DNA from: Zancudomyces culisetae HAW-14-8
Lineage: Eukaryota > Fungi > Kickxellomycota
NCBI GenBank assembly: GCA_052426225.1
Contig: JBNJNM010000011.1
Coordinates: 4,774,001 to 4,838,000 of the forward strand
Direction of reading: 5' to 3'
DNA: 64,000 bases
The notes beneath the pieces were generated by a model. The model did not search any database and was not told the DNA's origin. It was given only the letters and a program-made list of their open reading frames with translations. The translations under genes and the position numbers were made by a program. Below, piece after piece: positions 4,684 through 57,170 of the stretch (position 1 is its first letter; every line of letters begins with the position of its first letter).

Positions 4684-7351
4684 TTTTTACCTAAATGTTT
4701 TGTTTGCTTTTTTGGTTTGATTGTTTTCGTTAAAATTAAATTTCCAATTTAAGGAAAAGAGTATCTAAATAATATATAAAAATATGAATCTGGGCTGCGT
4801 ATATTTGCTTTGGGATGTGCTGTTACATTACTATTTTTATTGGTAGTTGCGACAACTTTTTTAACCACCATTTCCTCCTCCCCTTAACTTGGCTATTGCT
4901 ATGCCGCGACTCTTCCCAATTATCAAATTTTACAGGAATAATTGGGAAGAATCGCGGCATAGCAATAGCCAAGTTTGTTTTATTTGTTATTGGAGGTGGG
5001 TTTCAGATGACCACACAAAAAATTGTTCATTTCATGTGAACCACCCGCACCTGCGAACATCTGCTATCTTGGCACTTTTCAATGTACAAGTTTTCATGCA
5101 TTTTCCTTTTGGTTAACTTGATTGGCTTTTTAAATATGTAGGGTTCTGGGAAAAGCCCATACATTTTTTTTAAATACTTTTTTCCATTTGATGAATTTAT
5201 TAGCAGGCTTATGGTCAAAAATAAAAAAGTATGGCAGAAAATGTTTTTTTATCTAGATGCACTTACCAAGCCAAAGGAACAAGGGAAAGGAGTATGCAAT
5301 GAGCTTTTGCTGTTTAACTGAATGTTATTACATACACTTATGGTGTCCATAATATTTGTATAAAATTCTGTAGATACGCTCACCGTTCTTGTGGTTTTAG
5401 CTGCAATAACCCAAGCTAAGTTTACTTGAAGAACATCTTTATTCTGTCAAACAAAATACTATTTATATAATGTACTTATAAATGTTGCAGCTATGTGTAT
5501 GTATTTTGCATTTGAAAGTGCTTGTCCAAGTATATATTTTTTTAGAATGTTTTGGTGGGAGTGGGGACTATGGCGTAGAATTTATGAAAAAACAGACCAC
5601 TTTTCCGTCATTGGCATTACACCGTATAGTAGCAAAAGGAATACAACAACAACAGAAACAAATCTTCTCTTTTTAGGCATGAAGTGGATGAGAGAGATAA
5701 TTGTGTAGAGTTTTTATTTGAGAACTAACCAGTTGGGGAGTTCATTTATATCTTTTATGTGAAAGTTCAATCTTCCCTGCCGAGCACATGCTTGTTAGTC
5801 GCTACGGGTGAATATCACGTCTACTAATTTTAGTTCTCATCAAAATACATGGCACTAGCCAATGAAATAAAAATAGAGATTTTTAGTATCTGGCTCAGGA
5901 ATTGTAAATTACAATCACACTTTGATATATTCATTCACAAAACCACATTTTTTACCATCAATGGAACAACAGTTCAGGCGTGACACATAGCATAGGCTTC
6001 TTAAAAATTGAGCGTGCCATTTTCAAACTCTCTTTTCCAACTCTGAGCATTTAGGCCAATTCTCTATTCAATTACATTTTGTAGCTACTAAAGTGTAACA
6101 AGTTTCCATCCACTTAGCCCAAGCATAGGGCATCACAATAAGCTTAGAAAATATGTTACAAAGAAGGTAACATAATTATTTTTTGCATACCTGCTCAGAC
6201 TTCAAAGGAACATGATAAAATCAGCAGTTTATAAAATACAATCAAACGCAGTGGAAACAAATATCATTTAGAATAGAGGAATACGTTGATAAAAAACTTG
6301 CGCTTTATCTGTTACAACTGTACTTTTCGCATGAGAAACCCCGTTATGTTCCTCCCAACCTCATGTTCTCCCAGTTATCTAAACACTGCACCCCAAGCTT
6401 AATGAGACAGTTAAGAGTGCTGATTTTTTTATAAAAAAAAAACCCACACACTGCGCTGCATCTTGAGTTCGCGTTTTATGTGGAATAGGCCAAAACTGAC
6501 ATATTTTGGTTCGAGTGTTTCCCGACCACCAAAAGAAAGTCTTGATGCTTTACCTATTTTCAAAGTTGGTCTTTGCCAGTGTCATCAGGAAAGCATATTA
6601 TGACAAAAAAATTTTGTGAGCTGAAATATTGATATGTTTAAACAAGCAGATAATGAGCGTGCATAAATATTATAGAAAATGTCAGGTGTTGCAAGATAAG
6701 TAAAGTGTTATTGCAGAAAAATTCTTTTTTTTAATAGTGTTTTGTGTGGCATTTATTTGTTATCAAACCTCGCTATGACAAAACACATGTTTTTTGGTGT
6801 AAACAACACATCCCAGTAGTATAGGAGAAAAGTTTTGAATTTTTCCAATACATATTCTGGTTGCACAATTCTTAATAGGTGCCGAATAACAAATCAATCT
6901 ATTTCGACTTCAAACCCCAGCAATATTAGCTAATGAAATGGCACCATAGTTTATTTAGTGTTGCAAAAAAATATTGTTGTATAATGTAATCTCGTCTACT
7001 TTGTGAAACATTATAAGAGGGCTTTGTTTAGTGTTTCTAAATATTTTACAAACTTTGAGGGCTAATCGAAAAATTATATAGCCATTGGCTAAAAAACCAG
7101 TGGATTGGGTTTAATCAAAACAAAAAATTGTAAATCATCTGATGATAATTAAAAGGGTTTATAAATGATAGGTGAAGATTGAGCATTTATAAACCGCAGA
7201 TAAATGAATTCGCAATCAATAAATTTACTGCGATTCGTGGAGGTGCTGTAGAGAAAACAAGATGGCACAGTTTCTCATACCTCTCCCCACAACATTGGGG
7301 CAATAGCTGGAGACTGGGGGCGGGGGCGAGGTTAAAGGTGGAGATGCAAAC

Positions 7352-50194: not shown

Positions 50195-50644
50195 TTCACT
50201 TTTTATAACGTCTTACCTCCTCCCCTTGCATTTCTACAGCCAACTAAACTGTGGTTGTTTGCGGTAACATTTACAAACTGACGTTTAAGCGTATTGCATT
50301 CATTATCACTTTGTAAGGATTTTTAATACTCAAGCCATGTGACTTGTGGTTTTATTGTATTTGAATTTTTTTCAGCATCTATTGGCTAGCCATTCAAAAT
50401 AGTTGTTCTCGAATTTTAATAATAGCACCTCATTACTACTTTTATAAGCCCTTTTACGTAATAGAAAAATGAATAAATAAAAAGCTGGAGTGGCATAAAT
50501 AGTAAAAAGGAATATTTTTCAAGTGCGTTTTCGAGTATTAAAAAACACCAAAGATCCAAGGAATAGAACCATCGAAAATCTCTTGATACCGATTTGGCCC
50601 TTTTGTCTGTTTGTTCTTTCGTTCCGCACTAAATAGACACAGCT

Positions 50645-51251
50645 ATGGTTTGGCTCGGAAATTTTGTGGAGAAATTTAGATTCAAAGATCTACTAACACG
50701 GGAAACACTCTTCCCCTTATTAGTAATTGCTTTGGTCTTGTACTTTCTCTACGAACAATATAAAAATAAACGCGCTGATGCAATAAACAAAGATCCAAGG
50801 GTGAAAAGTAAGCTGGACAAACAACGTCGTGAGTACTACCAAAACAAACGAAATTTCAACTCTACCAATCAAAGTCCTGCTCTAGCCTCTACAGGTAGCA
50901 ATGGCGGTGACAATTCCCAAGAAAAAGGCCAGAGATCTGGCACTGGATCAAGTGATTCCAAGGTAACATCTTTTTTCATTACTATGTGTGAATTCTTTTC
51001 TGTATTAATATTACTGTTATCTGTTATTCGGATATTTAAGAACCAATTTAAGCTAATAAAAGCATTTTAACAAAATATCTACAAAGAGCCTTGGAACCAG
51101 CGGTAATCCTGAAGGTAATACAACAGCGAAGTCAAAGCTGAAGCAGCGTATCCCATACAAGATAAACAACATACGAGGATTTGGCGATATGAACAAGTCG
51201 GGTAAATCCTGTGGGATTGACCCGTTATTTGGCGGAGGGGGGTGAGGTTAA
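50645..51251 (+). CDS. SELENOS/SELENOK-like single-pass membrane protein; candidate selenoprotein (TGA 51243-51245 = Sec). Exons 50645-50962 and 51087 (or 51063)-51251
   Basis: N-terminal TM (LFPLLVIALVLYFLY), basic helical segment, G/S-rich tail. Phase-0 donor AAG|GTAACA at 50963. Exon 2 reads ...INNIRGFGDMNKSGKSCGIDPLFGGGG-TGA-GGT-TAA. The acceptor is a less common AAG. Confidence 0.65.
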
Positions 51252-51575
51252 GATTCCTCTTTATTTTCAATGCTTTTGTTTCTTCGCTTTTCACAAATCC
51301 TTTTTGCTCTATCTATCCGCTTTTTTTCAGTTTCTCAATGCTTTTACAGAGAAAAGTTGAGTTAAAAGCCAAGGGTAAAGTCGAAGATGGTGATGTGTGA
51401 AAGCTACACGGTGGGGGATGAAAGCATAGTAAAGAGGACGGGTTTTCTCTTTTTAAAAAAGGGAAGCGATCAAACCAACACAAATATTGTGGTATATAAT
51501 ACAACCATAAACTATTGTCTACACTTATAGTTTGTAGTGGACGTATTAACAACCCTACTAATATGAAAGGTGTGT

Positions 51576-51670
51576 TTTCAATTACATTTATGCAGACATC
51601 CTATGTCTCCGCAACATGCCCTCCTCTCGCAAACACTTTGGGCATTCTGGCGACGTAAATGTAATTGGAA
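51576..51670 (+). promoter_or_regulatory. Structured RNA element (three-way junction) in the putative 3' UTR; candidate non-canonical Sec-recoding element
   Basis: 17-bp helix 51576-51592/51654-51670 with two G.U pairs (valid only on the + strand), enclosing hairpins AGACAU/AUGUCU (51594-51608) and AUGCCC/GGGCAU (51616-51645). Confidence 0.5.
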
Positions 51671-54600
51671 TCTTGCATCAAAATTTTATTTTTCTTTGCT
51701 CTACCTATACCCCCTCTCTCTCTTTTACAACCGCGTGTAATATTGGAATATTTTTATCGCATTAGTACGAGTGTGGGGGTATTGGAGTACAAGAAAGGTG
51801 CACTCACTTTGACAACTATGGATTTGTCTGTTGGTTGATTTTAACTTAACACTTCATATTTTTCTATTTATTGCTGAGATTAGCTAGTAACTCCCAAGAA
51901 CCTTCTGGGGACTGGCGAGCTTTTCTATTCACTTTGTTGGGATTCCGGCAAGTTTACTTTTTCTCTTTTAATTTGGCCTTATTTGTTTATTTTTAGTTTA
52001 GGTGAGGATATATTTTTATAAAGTCAGGAGTTTAACACCTTAACTACAAACCTGTTATATTCTTTTAAATGGAACTACATTATAAACAAGATATCATCGT
52101 ATCTATCGAGCCAGCACTATCTATCTTGCTTTTAACTGTTTGCAGATGCTATAGAAAATGTGTGTAAATATACACATGCTTTTGAAATTTTTAGTTGACC
52201 TTTAGGCGTGGCTTCGGGTTTGCAGCGCATACAAATACACGCTCATACACCCCTATATCTAAGTATTGGTATTAAAAGTTGAACTGGGTGTGTATATTAT
52301 CTTTTTGTAGTCAGTAGGCCATCCAAAAACCTTATATGAGTGAGATGTAAGTGCAACGTACAGCCAGCTACGCCATAGCGAACCACAACTAGGCATGGTA
52401 AATGAGAAAAAGCCCATCTTGGTCAAACCAACCAATTGTTCAATTGATATTAAATTGTTAGTTTTATCAAAACGAGTTCAATTTCTTCTAATCGGATATT
52501 GTTGTTATGCCAGTGTGGGCGTGAATTATAAAATAACAAATGACAGATGCAACTAGTTTGTCATATCAACTCATCTACTTTTTGTAATGTAGCACATATT
52601 TTAGTTTTTAGTTTGCGCTTTGTGTTAAATGAGCCTGAGAAAGGTTTTTTCCCTCTTTTTTTATTTGAAGGTAAAGAGCCAACACATTTTGGTAAACCAA
52701 ACAACATTACTAATTTTGTTTACAAAAGTTATAAAATCAGATATATCTTGATAATTATTTTTTTGCATTTGAAACCAGATAAGCAATAGCAAAAATGCAA
52801 TTCTGTAATAAACAACAAAAACCTATTTTTTTTTACTTAATAATGGATCACTCTCAAAACCCTTTATAGTATTATTAGTTGTTTGCTGAGAAATCGATGA
52901 AGTAAACAATATCTAAGTGCTCTTTAAATCCTCTACCATTTGTTTTTAGGTGTAATCCTCAACATTAAACCGGGTTTTTGAAGGTTGAAAAGCACACATC
53001 TTATTTTGGAACAAGCCTTATGATAGGAAGTGTGTTTTTATTTATGTCCAATTAGTAAAAAGATGAATAAAAAACTACAAAACTCGCCAAAGTTAATCAC
53101 ATGGACAGCAATTTAGCAGCAAACTTCACGGTTTTTATTCTAGCCATGGCGTGCCTGGTAATTTTAAAGGCAGAGGCATATGTTATATATACCCGGGATT
53201 GGAAAACAAAATATCATGGTTTGGATTATTTAATACTATACTTTGTATATCTCCATAGCTAGATGCTAAAAATGTGATAAAAAACATATGTGGCAGTATT
53301 AAACAATAAAGTTACCAAATTTGTACCTGTGCCTTACATGAATTATTGAGATGATGTATCAAACATCAACCACTTACTAATAATTTATTTATTCTAAACT
53401 ATGCTAGTATTGATGTAGGTAATAAGATGACATTCTAATAACTATTGATTTGTAAGACACCCTCTTGTTACAAAGTGACGTTATGATTAACAAAAACACT
53501 AAGTTTTTTTTTTAATAAAAAAGACTAATTATGGTGACAATAAATTGTGTAATAAAACACATATTTGCTGAATTAGTACTAATTGTAGACTTTCGATCCT
53601 TTGGACATGAGGATAGATGCCCTCATTAACACAAATTTCACCGATTTAGTCGATTAGGTTTTTTTTTGCTTGCCTTTCCTATAATTGATTGGAGTTTAGC
53701 AATCTCAGGCATTCAGCTTCGTAAGAAAGGTCAGCAAACTAAACTTTCCTATGTTCATGCAAAACAAAATAACAAAATAACCAAAAAACCAAAAAAACCA
53801 AAAAAAACAAGGCAACACAATTACGAAAAATAATTTTGACAGCAACTTTGTAAGCATACTGCAAAAGGTGTAAATGTCGGATTCCCAACAACATAAACCG
53901 AGATAGAAACTTTGTGAGTGGGTGGTGTGTTAGGCCTAACTTTTGTGCAAAGTAGAGCATGCTTTCGGGCAAGTAGAATGATGCACTATAAACAGAGTGG
54001 GGCCCAAAAGGAGGAGGATGGGGGGGGGGGTTATATTCTCCATTTTTCAGTTAATATTTATTATTTTTATGTGGGTAAATCAGTAACTTTGGCTTGAGGA
54101 AAGCTAAACACTAAAAAATAGAATTTAGGGGCACCCCGCAGACCAAGTCAACTAGTATCGGGCTAATGTGTTTCATCATTTCTGAATACATTTTCTGAAT
54201 ACATCTTGTGTAAACAGTGTATACGCCAAAAAAAGCAATCATTTTAAATGCGCGGAGGGCTTGACATCCCCTACAAGCACCCTTTCCTTCCATACACCAC
54301 TACTTTTTTTGTCTGATTTCTTCTAAAAAAAATATAAACATGTTATCAGGAGTTATGTGAAAATTCAAAATGGGAAACAAAAAACATGGGTGTGTTTTAT
54401 AGATGCAGCTATGGGTGGTAGTTTATCCTTTTTACTTGTCTAGAAAAAGCGCAAGCTATGTCTGCACTGAATAGAAGCCTTTCTACAAACAATACAGAGT
54501 ACTAACCTACCTAAATTTAGCCATCTCTTGTGTATACTTAGTAATACAAGTTTCTTAAATCGGTTGAGATTAGTATGGGTTTGCACCATGCTCAATTTTA

Positions 54601-57170
54601 TAGGTAGATAGAGGGCTAAAAGGTCTTGTTTTGCTGATGTTTTTCGTCATTTTATTATATGTCAAGATTTTACATGGTTGAGACAAGTGAATTTGTGTGC
54701 TTGAAATAAATAAAAAATTAGAAATTTGCATTTATTTATATCAGGTATATTCATCTTTTGCTGTTCAATTAAAATTTCTTTGCAAAAAAAGAATGAAATT
54801 CTCTGCAATTTCATATCAGGAAATTTTTTTTTTTGAGAAACTGTGTCGGACAGGTACTAGCGAATTTCCCCAACGTGAAAATGATGAATAAACCTCGATT
54901 TTTTTTCTTTTAATTGTATCAGTCACAAATCAATCATATCGATTTTAGAAACAAGTTAGCAGTTTACTTGTTTTGACTTGCGTATTTTAACAAATTATAT
55001 TGATTCAATCTTTTGAGAAAAAGAAGTTGCGATATTGAATATCTGCAATTTGTAATGGAAAGTACAGCCAAAGACAGTTGTTCTATTTAGAACACCTTTA
55101 GTCATCCTGCAGGTAAAGGCCCTTTAGCTAGCTTTGACTAACCAGGAAGTAAAGTGTTGGGGAATGGCGCAGCTTCGGGTGTTTTGTGAAAAAAAAACAA
55201 TCCATGTGGAAGCAAGAGTAACAGCACACAGCCTAGTGTAAACAAAACGTGTTTGGCAGTTTTCGGCAATAATAGAAAAGCAAAGCAAAAGTAAAAGCAA
55301 AAGTAAAACTAAAACTAAAAAAAAGTAGAATTAAGGGGAAAAAGTCAAATGGAACGGTAATAATATCTGCACTTCTCCAGTAAACCAAACAACGGATTCT
55401 AAATGGGAATATCAAGTGAAGGTTTACCTTTTGCAAAGCTAATGGAAAATCCAAATGTCTCACGTTGTTATATAAGATTTTTCAAAAGTGCTTGAAGCTA
55501 ATATACATGCATGCTTTAAGGTAAAAAAAAAAGGAAAAAGGCGGGAAAAAATCAACCAGTAGATAGGGCTATACTATAATTTTAGTAAGATTTTCAAGGT
55601 GAAAATTGAGCGTAGTGAAAATATTGGAAGGTTTTCGTTTTTTTTTCTAGTGAATGGGAGGTAGGTGAGTGTCGGAGATTTACAATTCTTCCCTAGTATT
55701 TTACCACAAAATCGTTTTATTTTTAGCAATCTTGCACAATTACCTAAAATCAACACTAGCCAATATAGGTTTCATTAAAGACATTTCTAATGGCATAACG
55801 CAAATTAGGCAGTGCCTTACAGAAAAAAGGGCAAAAAGTAAAAATTTGCATTCAACCAGTTTGTCACCAAATGAAGTACATGTTATTGTATTATGCTGTT
55901 CTTTTTAATATGCATCATTTATTTGCTCACAGTAAATCAAAATAAAAATTACTTAATTATGAAATTGTTGTGGTACAACTGAATTTTGGAAAAAAAAAAA
56001 AGAAAATCAACCTTAAGATTTTGAGCAAAAGTGAAAAAGAGCAGTGATAAGAGCTGTAATGAAAAAAGGAGTATAAAAGAAGTTTGAAGCCCACTCTAGA
56101 AAAGGTCGGAAACTAGGAACAGACATCATAAAGGTGAACTTTTTTTCCTTTCTGCAACATTGTAACAATAAAAGCTTCTCTTTGTAGCAAGACAGGAGGG
56201 TCCAATACAAAGCTTTGTAAAGTAGCAGCATCAAAAGTATCCAAAAGAAATCCTTCTTTGTGCGCAAGCATAGCTGAATAAATGTTTGCATAGCTGCACA
56301 GTTTCTGGCCATTGCCTTGGTAGCTTAGACATTGTTATATTGTGCGCCGAACCCGGTCACCGAGAGACTAACAAAGAGACAAAAGTAAAACGAATCGTAT
56401 GTGCGCCAATTAAATTCACCAACTGGCCTCTAAGGACGTTATTCAAATAAACACAGGCGAAAGATAGATAACCATCACTACAAGGGATACGCTCTTCCTC
56501 TTTGAATCTATTGGATCGGCAGATACATCTTTTTTGTTTCTTTAAAGAAAGCTGAAAGAGGAAAATAGGTAAAGGCGAAAAAATATCAAGTTCTCTCCGC
56601 TTGTTTTTCTGGTGTTATACACACACTCTTGTACCAGATCTTCATTTTTTCAAGGAATTGCTAAGAAAAGCCTCAGAATCCGAGAGAAAAGGTGAAAGCT
56701 GTGATTTCCTCTTTTCATTGACTGGTATCTCCAGCAAAGTCTATAAAGGGGCAAGTATTATATAGAAATAGAATATTCTGATTGTATCCAACCAAACGAA
56801 TTACATATTCTCTTGAATCAGGCGTTCAAATATTTTGACGCCGAGAGTTTACTTCAAACAATAAGCAAAAAAAAAAAGGTGGGTATATAAAAAGCAACAA
56901 GATTTGTTTTGCACAAAATAAAAACATCGGTAAAAGCAATTCGCTATAACTTTTACAGAGGAACACACATTGTATTTTATGGCTTCTAATTCAGCCAACT
57001 GGTTTGATTACTTGTGTATATAAACAAAAGACACCAAAAAGATACATCTGGACTTTCGAGTGTAATTAACAATTGGCAAAACAAACTTGTTGAAACAGCT
57101 ACACACTAGACACATATTAACCTGCCATATTATCAACTACTCTACAAACATTTCTCAAAAGTATTAGCAA

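Follow-up and report, generated by a model that had tools for sequence, protein, structure and literature searches.

Within the window, the 64,000-nucleotide stretch of DNA analyzed here from Zancudomyces culisetae, a mosquito-gut fungus of the Harpellales, a frame check placed a two-exon gene of 160 codons on the forward strand (50645-50962 and 51087-51251). Exon 1 (50645-50962; 106 codons, 40% GC) encodes a short N-terminus, a transmembrane (TM) helix, basic helices, and the start of a G/S/N-rich disordered tail. The predicted phase 0 intron (50963-51086; 124 nt) has GT-AG boundaries (GTAACA...AAAG) and a GC content of 23%, compared with 22% for the SelH intron and 27% for SPS intron 1 of the same genome. 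Among the nearby donor and acceptor pairs tested, 50962/51087 was the only one with GT-AG boundaries, and it preserves the frame. Exon 2 (51087-51251; 47% GC) supplies 52 codons followed by an in-frame TGA at codon 159, the penultimate codon (51243-51245; candidate Sec159), a GGT (Gly) codon directly after it (51246-51248), and a TAA stop one Gly codon 3' of the TGA (51249-51251). The TGA is preceded by 158 sense codons. The only Cys codon of the gene, TGT at 51210-51212, encodes Cys148, a candidate resolving cysteine 11 residues upstream of the TGA.

The gene was compared with that of a second strain, COL-18-3 (GCA_001969505.1), which is represented by two contigs. Three coding single-nucleotide differences were found, at 50713 in exon 1 and at 51209 and 51242 in exon 2, and all three are synonymous third-position changes, so that the reading frames of both exons are supported. 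The TGA-GGT-TAA end was identical in both COL-18-3 contigs; the two strains are ~99% identical. The change G51242A destroys the GT at 51242, the only splice donor overlapping the UGA, and thereby speaks against the TGA being normally bypassed by splicing. An earlier note on this DNA had proposed the splice from 50962 to 51087, yielding a protein of ~160 residues, and an end of TGT...GGC GGA GGG GGG TGA GGT TAA with a Cys 11 residues upstream; the first is upheld by the frames and by the synonymous changes in both exons, and the second can be read directly in the sequence. The same note expected standard annotation to truncate or mis-splice the gene. It was indeed mishandled, but by being left out entirely: the GenBank annotation of GCA_001969505.1 calls no gene at the corresponding place. 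These results indicate that a real, unannotated two-exon gene almost certainly lies at 50645-51251.

We examined the architecture of the encoded protein. A TM segment is predicted at 50693-50749 (residues about 16/17-35; KD19 = 1.82) and falls within helix 19-48 of an AlphaFold model built for exon 1 in single-sequence mode. This N-terminal KD19 peak marks the only hydrophobic segment of the protein; exon 2 encodes none. The model contains a second helix at residues 51-74, which is basic, follows an Asp-Pro break, and is encoded at 50795-50866; from residue 75 onward, the chain is modeled as coil. The 52 residues of exon 2 include 11 Gly (21%), 8 Lys/Arg, 3 Asp/Glu, and 3 Pro, the Pro content being low. 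The chain is predicted to end in Cys148 ... GGGG-UGA-G-UAA. The single N-terminal TM helix, the basic helical segment, and the G/S/K-rich tail described in the earlier note are thus borne out. The basic residues after the TM segment fit a cytosolic C-terminus, and, by analogy with the family discussed below, the protein may lie in the ER membrane with type III topology. The VCP/p97-interacting motif (VIM) has the consensus R-x5-AA-x2-R. No match to this consensus was found in the candidate, in which only an R-x9-R spacing occurs at residues 52-62 of the basic helix, with Asp-Lys at the Ala-Ala positions.

The SELENOK/SELENOS family is defined by architecture, without a sequence criterion: its members have one N-terminal TM segment, a G-rich basic segment that is disordered and contains much Gly, Pro, and positively charged residue, and Sec as the second or third residue from the end (PMC10650576). 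The candidate has a single N-terminal TM segment, a disordered Gly-rich and basic segment (though one low in Pro), and an in-frame TGA followed by one Gly codon. It therefore shows all three defining features of the family, provided that the UGA is read as Sec. SELENOS consists of two helices followed by a disordered region with a Cys174-Sec188 bond (PMC10650576), and the human protein ends in Gly-Gly-Sec-Gly, the truncated form exposing a Gly-Gly degron (PMC7090344). The candidate shares with SELENOS the single N-terminal TM segment, two cytosolic helices followed by a disordered Gly-rich and basic tail, a single Cys preceding Sec in that tail, and, if the UGA encodes Sec, the Gly-Gly-[Sec]-Gly C-terminus. 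It differs in its length (160 versus 189 residues), in its Cys-Sec spacing (11 versus 14 in the human protein), and in having little Pro, no match to the SELENOS profile PF06936, no VIM Ala-Ala, and no canonical SECIS. With SELENOK/SelG, a family that also has Cys-containing members in fungi and plants, it shares the architectural class and Gly-Gly before Sec. By eye, NIRG in the candidate resembles HLRG in the tail of human SelK, HLRGSPPPMAGG (PMC12169847), a resemblance that is not a significant match, and the gap from the RG motif to Sec is 21 residues in the candidate versus 8 in SelK. The candidate is also longer than SELENOK/SelG, carries a SelS-like helical region, and has no match to PF10961. 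Furthermore, the fungal SELENOK/SELENOS members described so far carry Cys instead of Sec (PMC10650576).

Homology and fold searches were performed exon by exon, which lowers their sensitivity; the exons were joined only for the frame and RNA-pairing checks. Neither exon matched any Pfam or NCBIfam profile. PF06936 gave no match by exon or in the genome, and PF10961 gave none by exon; the genome search with PF10961 was also silent on the controls, and its negative result is hence weak. No homologue of either exon was found by a word-based protein search, by phmmer against 1.8 billion representatives, or in the ESM Atlas features, nor was one found among PDB sequences, in fold searches, in metagenome contigs, or in a search of the genome for paralogues. 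A single phmmer match was rejected as a translated repeat array. Synteny was followed through the upstream SDR gene, whose product is 100% identical to a Z. culisetae protein, and proved to be broken in the Smittium clade, where no orthologue was found; in Smittium and Furculomyces, the SDR gene adjoins PheRS-beta, and the candidate exons had no match there. For the SelS/K-family assignment made in the earlier note, the architecture stands, but sequence homology was not found and the VIM is degenerate. The candidate resembles a SELENOS-type protein and probably functions like one, while neither PF06936 nor PF10961 recognizes its sequence.

We also estimated how often such a gene end would arise by chance. 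TGA was the commonest stop codon among 42 sampled gene ends (16/42, 38%); because TGA is so common a stop in this genome, an in-frame TGA alone is no evidence for Sec. In the same 42 gene ends, no Gly-Gly end was observed, a Gly codon followed the stop in one, and a further stop stood at the second codon in one. With both strands and all frames counted, 54 Mb of sequence contains 22 instances of the 15-nt pattern GGN GGN TGA GGN stop. As a rough estimate, gene ends of the form GG-TGA-G-stop would be expected by chance ~0.01-0.1 times per genome, before the TM and tail architecture is counted, and for short proteins that have a single TM segment and one Cys in the tail, the rate should be lower still. 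Three other Gly-Gly-TGA-Gly-stop sites outside Glu/Asp-type repeats lie on the minus strand (C11:4325427, C11:1949561, and C9:1273704) and could include a second SelK-like gene.

The earlier note stated that some early-diverging fungi, Harpellales among them, are reported to retain the Sec machinery, and this holds for the present host. Our search of the genome recovered a SecS gene (E value of 4e-64), a tRNA-Sec with the anticodon TCA that scored higher than the Rfam cut-off, an SPS gene with an in-frame TGA in the context LKG-UGA-GCK, and a SelH gene (C11, near 3,954,430) with an in-frame UGA in the context CTR-UGA. eEFSec and PSTK have been listed for this genome and SBP2 for its transcriptome in a published supplement, and the Sec machinery is reported to be intact and expressed (PMC12611240). 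The fungal selenoproteins on record are SPS, SelenoH, SelenoU, AhpC, MsrA, a DI-like protein, and TR, and Z. culisetae has been credited with SelenoH and SPS only (bioRxiv 10.1101/314781). Selenoprofiles applied to the Z. culisetae genome and transcriptome reported no SelK or SelS (PMC12611240). Consistent with the statement in the earlier note that this family is not known among the reported fungal selenoproteins, it is absent from the lists of both sources, and no report of a Sec-type SelK or SelS in fungi was found in the literature, as judged on the discovery preprint and the 2025 supplement. The reported fungal selenoproteins resemble the candidate in that they belong to the same Sec-using lineage and mostly have no recognizable SECIS, and differ in that none is a SelK/SelS-type membrane protein (bioRxiv 10.1101/314781). 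A SECIS was found for 5 of 16 fungal genes and the other 11 were without one, and the fungal SECIS was called an open problem (bioRxiv 10.1101/314781). SelO of Z. culisetae (C13:1933767-1935509) is a Cys form that ends in CSCSS-TAG and is convergent with PGK.

We then analyzed the RNA structure at the candidate gene. No canonical SECIS (UGA/GA quartet) was found within ~1.1 kb of the gene. The SECIS model RF00031 likewise recognized neither the SPS nor the SelH gene of Z. culisetae, and its best match was rejected as a SECIS since it falls within an acetyl-CoA carboxylase-like ORF. The 3'UTR can form a long, imperfect hairpin of 184 nt on the forward strand (51255-51438) that has no UGA/GA quartet. 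Its outer helix (51255-51265/51428-51438) starts 4 nt after the stop and 10 nt after the UGA, and most of its pairs have probabilities of 0.92-1.0. The hairpin had z = -4.5, and z was about -2.7 against local shuffles. The 3' region of the candidate was the most stable among 43 and among 225 stop-flanking regions, and a helix of at least 10 bp at the same offset was seen in 0/42 gene ends and in 5/224 looser controls. A similar pyrimidine/purine hairpin follows the ordinary stop of PGK. Farther downstream, a three-way junction is predicted on the same strand (51576-51670), lying 325 nt past the stop and closed by a 17-bp stem; it had z = -4.7 in the sense and -2.6 in the antisense direction, and 3 of 30 control gene ends reached z ≤ -4.8. 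No such junction was shared in the SPS or SelH UTRs. A 10-mer common to the candidate UTR and the SPS UTRs, UGUGAAA[CG]CU, was rejected as a motif, as the genome holds 102 copies of it and, in the SPS UTRs, it is simply the complement of the SPS coding strand. The predicted 3' structures fit the Sec reading without proving that the UGA is recoded.

The SPS loci of the Harpellales provided a comparison. Loci were compared from S. simulii, F. boomerangus (together with a second assembly with an identical protein), S. culicis, S. megazygosporum, and Z. culisetae, and the Sec TGA was present in SPS at every locus fetched. In the SPS mRNAs of these five species, a covarying duplex of 9-12 bp can form between the coding segment after the UGA and a segment of the 3'UTR that lies 57-237 nt past the stop, with +9 to +17 paired in 6/6 assemblies. 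At +15, the third base of a synonymous Ser codon, the pair is A-U, C-G, or G-U depending on the species; C-G and A-U occur at +16, and A-U and G-C at +17. In each species, 200-297 other windows of the SPS gene were scored for duplex energy, and at most one of them was not surpassed by this site. The coding strand of the duplex crosses an exon junction in four of the species, and there the helix could form only after splicing. There is good comparative evidence for this predicted long-range helix beside the SPS Sec codon, and we infer that it may act in Sec recoding and be the missing fungal element. No earlier report of the duplex was found in the literature. In the candidate gene, a helix is predicted at +10 to +20, nearly the same offset. 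SelH of Z. culisetae has no equally clear +9 duplex; a weaker one is possible (+14..+29 with UTR +87), pairing around the Sec codon could produce a local hairpin, and a SECIS-like fold in its UTR was not significant (z = -0.5). The duplex may thus not be general and lends the candidate only modest support.

Helices a few nucleotides 3' of a Sec UGA are also found in the SRE of SELENON and the PSL/SPUR of SelS, and a proximal stem-loop is present in mammalian SelS and most other mRNAs with a C-terminal Sec codon (PMC6844570). In both SelS and the candidate, the 3'UTR stem-loop begins at nt 3-4 (nt 3-36 for the SelS PSL, PMC6844570; from nt 4 for the candidate), but the SelS hairpin measures 34 nt, whereas the helix of the candidate closes a UTR hairpin of 184 nt. 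The Harpellales SPS helix is distinct from these elements in being long range, joining the coding region to the 3'UTR over ~1 kb. Two further observations were made on the SPS mRNAs. The 7-mer AUGACGC is invariant in four Smittium-clade SPS 3' regions, 159-409 nt past the stop, despite different downstream genes; its background frequency is 0.014 per 500 nt, it is absent in Z. culisetae, and no consistent pairing partner for it was found in the SPS mRNAs. In Z. culisetae, a GC-rich structured stretch without an Rfam match lies ~190-270 nt after the SPS stop (C21).

Several explanations other than Sec incorporation were considered. The reading frame of exon 1 continues through the predicted intron to 51070 and includes a hydrophobic stretch (KD19 of 2.47), and retention of intron 1 would leave exon 2 non-coding and yield a protein of 141 residues that has two hydrophobic segments. 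However, the extension is U-rich, has 23% GC, and is bounded by GT and AG, whereas exon 2 is at 47% GC, contains 52 codons without a stop in the spliced frame, and carries two synonymous changes; in addition, no record of the unspliced protein was found. We consider intron retention exceedingly improbable. A further intron running from exon 2 (GTAAAT at 51202 or GTGAGG at 51242) to an AG at 51330 or 51349 would remove the TGA and add a short third exon. Donor-like GT and pyrimidine-rich AG sites are present, and splicing from 51242 to 51330 would open ~23 more codons, but the GT at 51242 is removed by G51242A in both COL-18-3 contigs, 51202-51251 has 52% GC against 22-27% in the introns, both exon 2 changes are synonymous in the read-through frame, and the pyrimidine tract is accounted for by the hairpin. 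Such alternative splicing is very unlikely.

The remaining explanations accept the gene model and treat the UGA as an ordinary stop. The gene might be an orphan encoding a single-pass membrane protein with a Gly-rich tail that stops at the TGA, with GGT TAA following by chance. The absence of detectable SelK/SelS homology, the use of TGA as the stop of 38% of sampled genes, and the selection of the locus from a whole-genome scan, where rare patterns surface, are all in keeping with coincidence; it is the low expected frequency of the joint pattern, which should be far rarer still together with a single TM segment and one tail Cys, and the fact that the host is among the few fungi decoding Sec, that make coincidence a poor explanation and lead us to consider it improbable. 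Alternatively, the gene may descend from a Sec-type SelK/S gene whose UGA is now a plain stop, the product being a 158-residue protein with a GGGG end and one Cys. A relic of this kind would agree with the lack of a canonical SECIS at the candidate, with the small selenoproteome in which SelO is a Cys form, and with the frequency of TGA stops. Against it, the Sec machinery is intact and reported to be expressed, the known Sec genes of this genome likewise lack a canonical SECIS, and two strains preserve the Gly-stop that follows the TGA, though these are ~99% identical. We regard a relic as unlikely, though worth keeping in mind. By contrast, descent from a Sec-type SelK/S gene as such is very probable.

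We favor the explanation that the gene encodes a SELENOK/SELENOS-type ER selenoprotein, the third selenoprotein of this fungus, and that the UGA at codon 159 is probably recoded at present; we infer, with good support, the incorporation of Sec at this codon. The UGA would be decoded by the resident tRNA-Sec, eEFSec, and SBP2, and decoding may be helped by a non-canonical 3'UTR structure, the +10 helix of the candidate possibly acting like the +9..+17 duplex of SPS or the proximal stem-loop of SelS. As judged from the family, the product would cross the ER membrane once, with its tail lying in the cytosol, and Sec159 and Cys148 could form a selenylsulfide that is reduced by thioredoxin. The flexible tail might serve at ER membrane complexes, either as a disulfide reductase or as a redox switch. 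The probable setting would be ERAD or the quality control of membrane proteins, although for an ERAD/Cdc48 role of the candidate itself, which is suggested by analogy, our confidence falls somewhat short of even. Failed recoding would yield a 158-residue product ending in Gly-Gly, as in truncated human SELENOS and SELENOK. A broader proposal is that the candidate is the first SelK/SelS-type protein with Sec from a fungus and that recoding of its UGA relies on a non-canonical mechanism of the Harpellales, a helix starting 9-10 nt past the Sec codon and paired with the distant 3'UTR, that replaces or supplements the SECIS and of which the SPS duplex is the first part to be described; we put this forward tentatively, with the balance leaning against it as a whole.

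If the favored explanation is correct, Z. culisetae has a third selenoprotein, and it belongs to a family unreported with Sec in fungi, where the SelK/S-like proteins known so far have Cys. A further implication would be that profile-based searches miss diverged proteins with a C-terminal Sec and that fungal selenoproteomes may be undercounted. The SPS duplex and the 3'UTR of the candidate offer specific, mutable structures for the question of the fungal SECIS in a culturable fungus, and fungal recoding structures also bear on the expression of selenoproteins in yeast.

Other features of the window were observed. Directly 5' of the ATG, 50590-50644 contains a pyrimidine tract and AG sites; this could be a 5' intron, and an upstream exon is conceivable. 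Between the candidate gene and a Cdc25-like phosphatase gene, ~5 kb (51950-57170) contains neither an annotated gene nor a long ORF and shows small indels between the two strains. The most stable fold of the window is formed by an inverted repeat at 4886-4975, whose nearly perfect 38-bp arms are separated by a 14-nt spacer.
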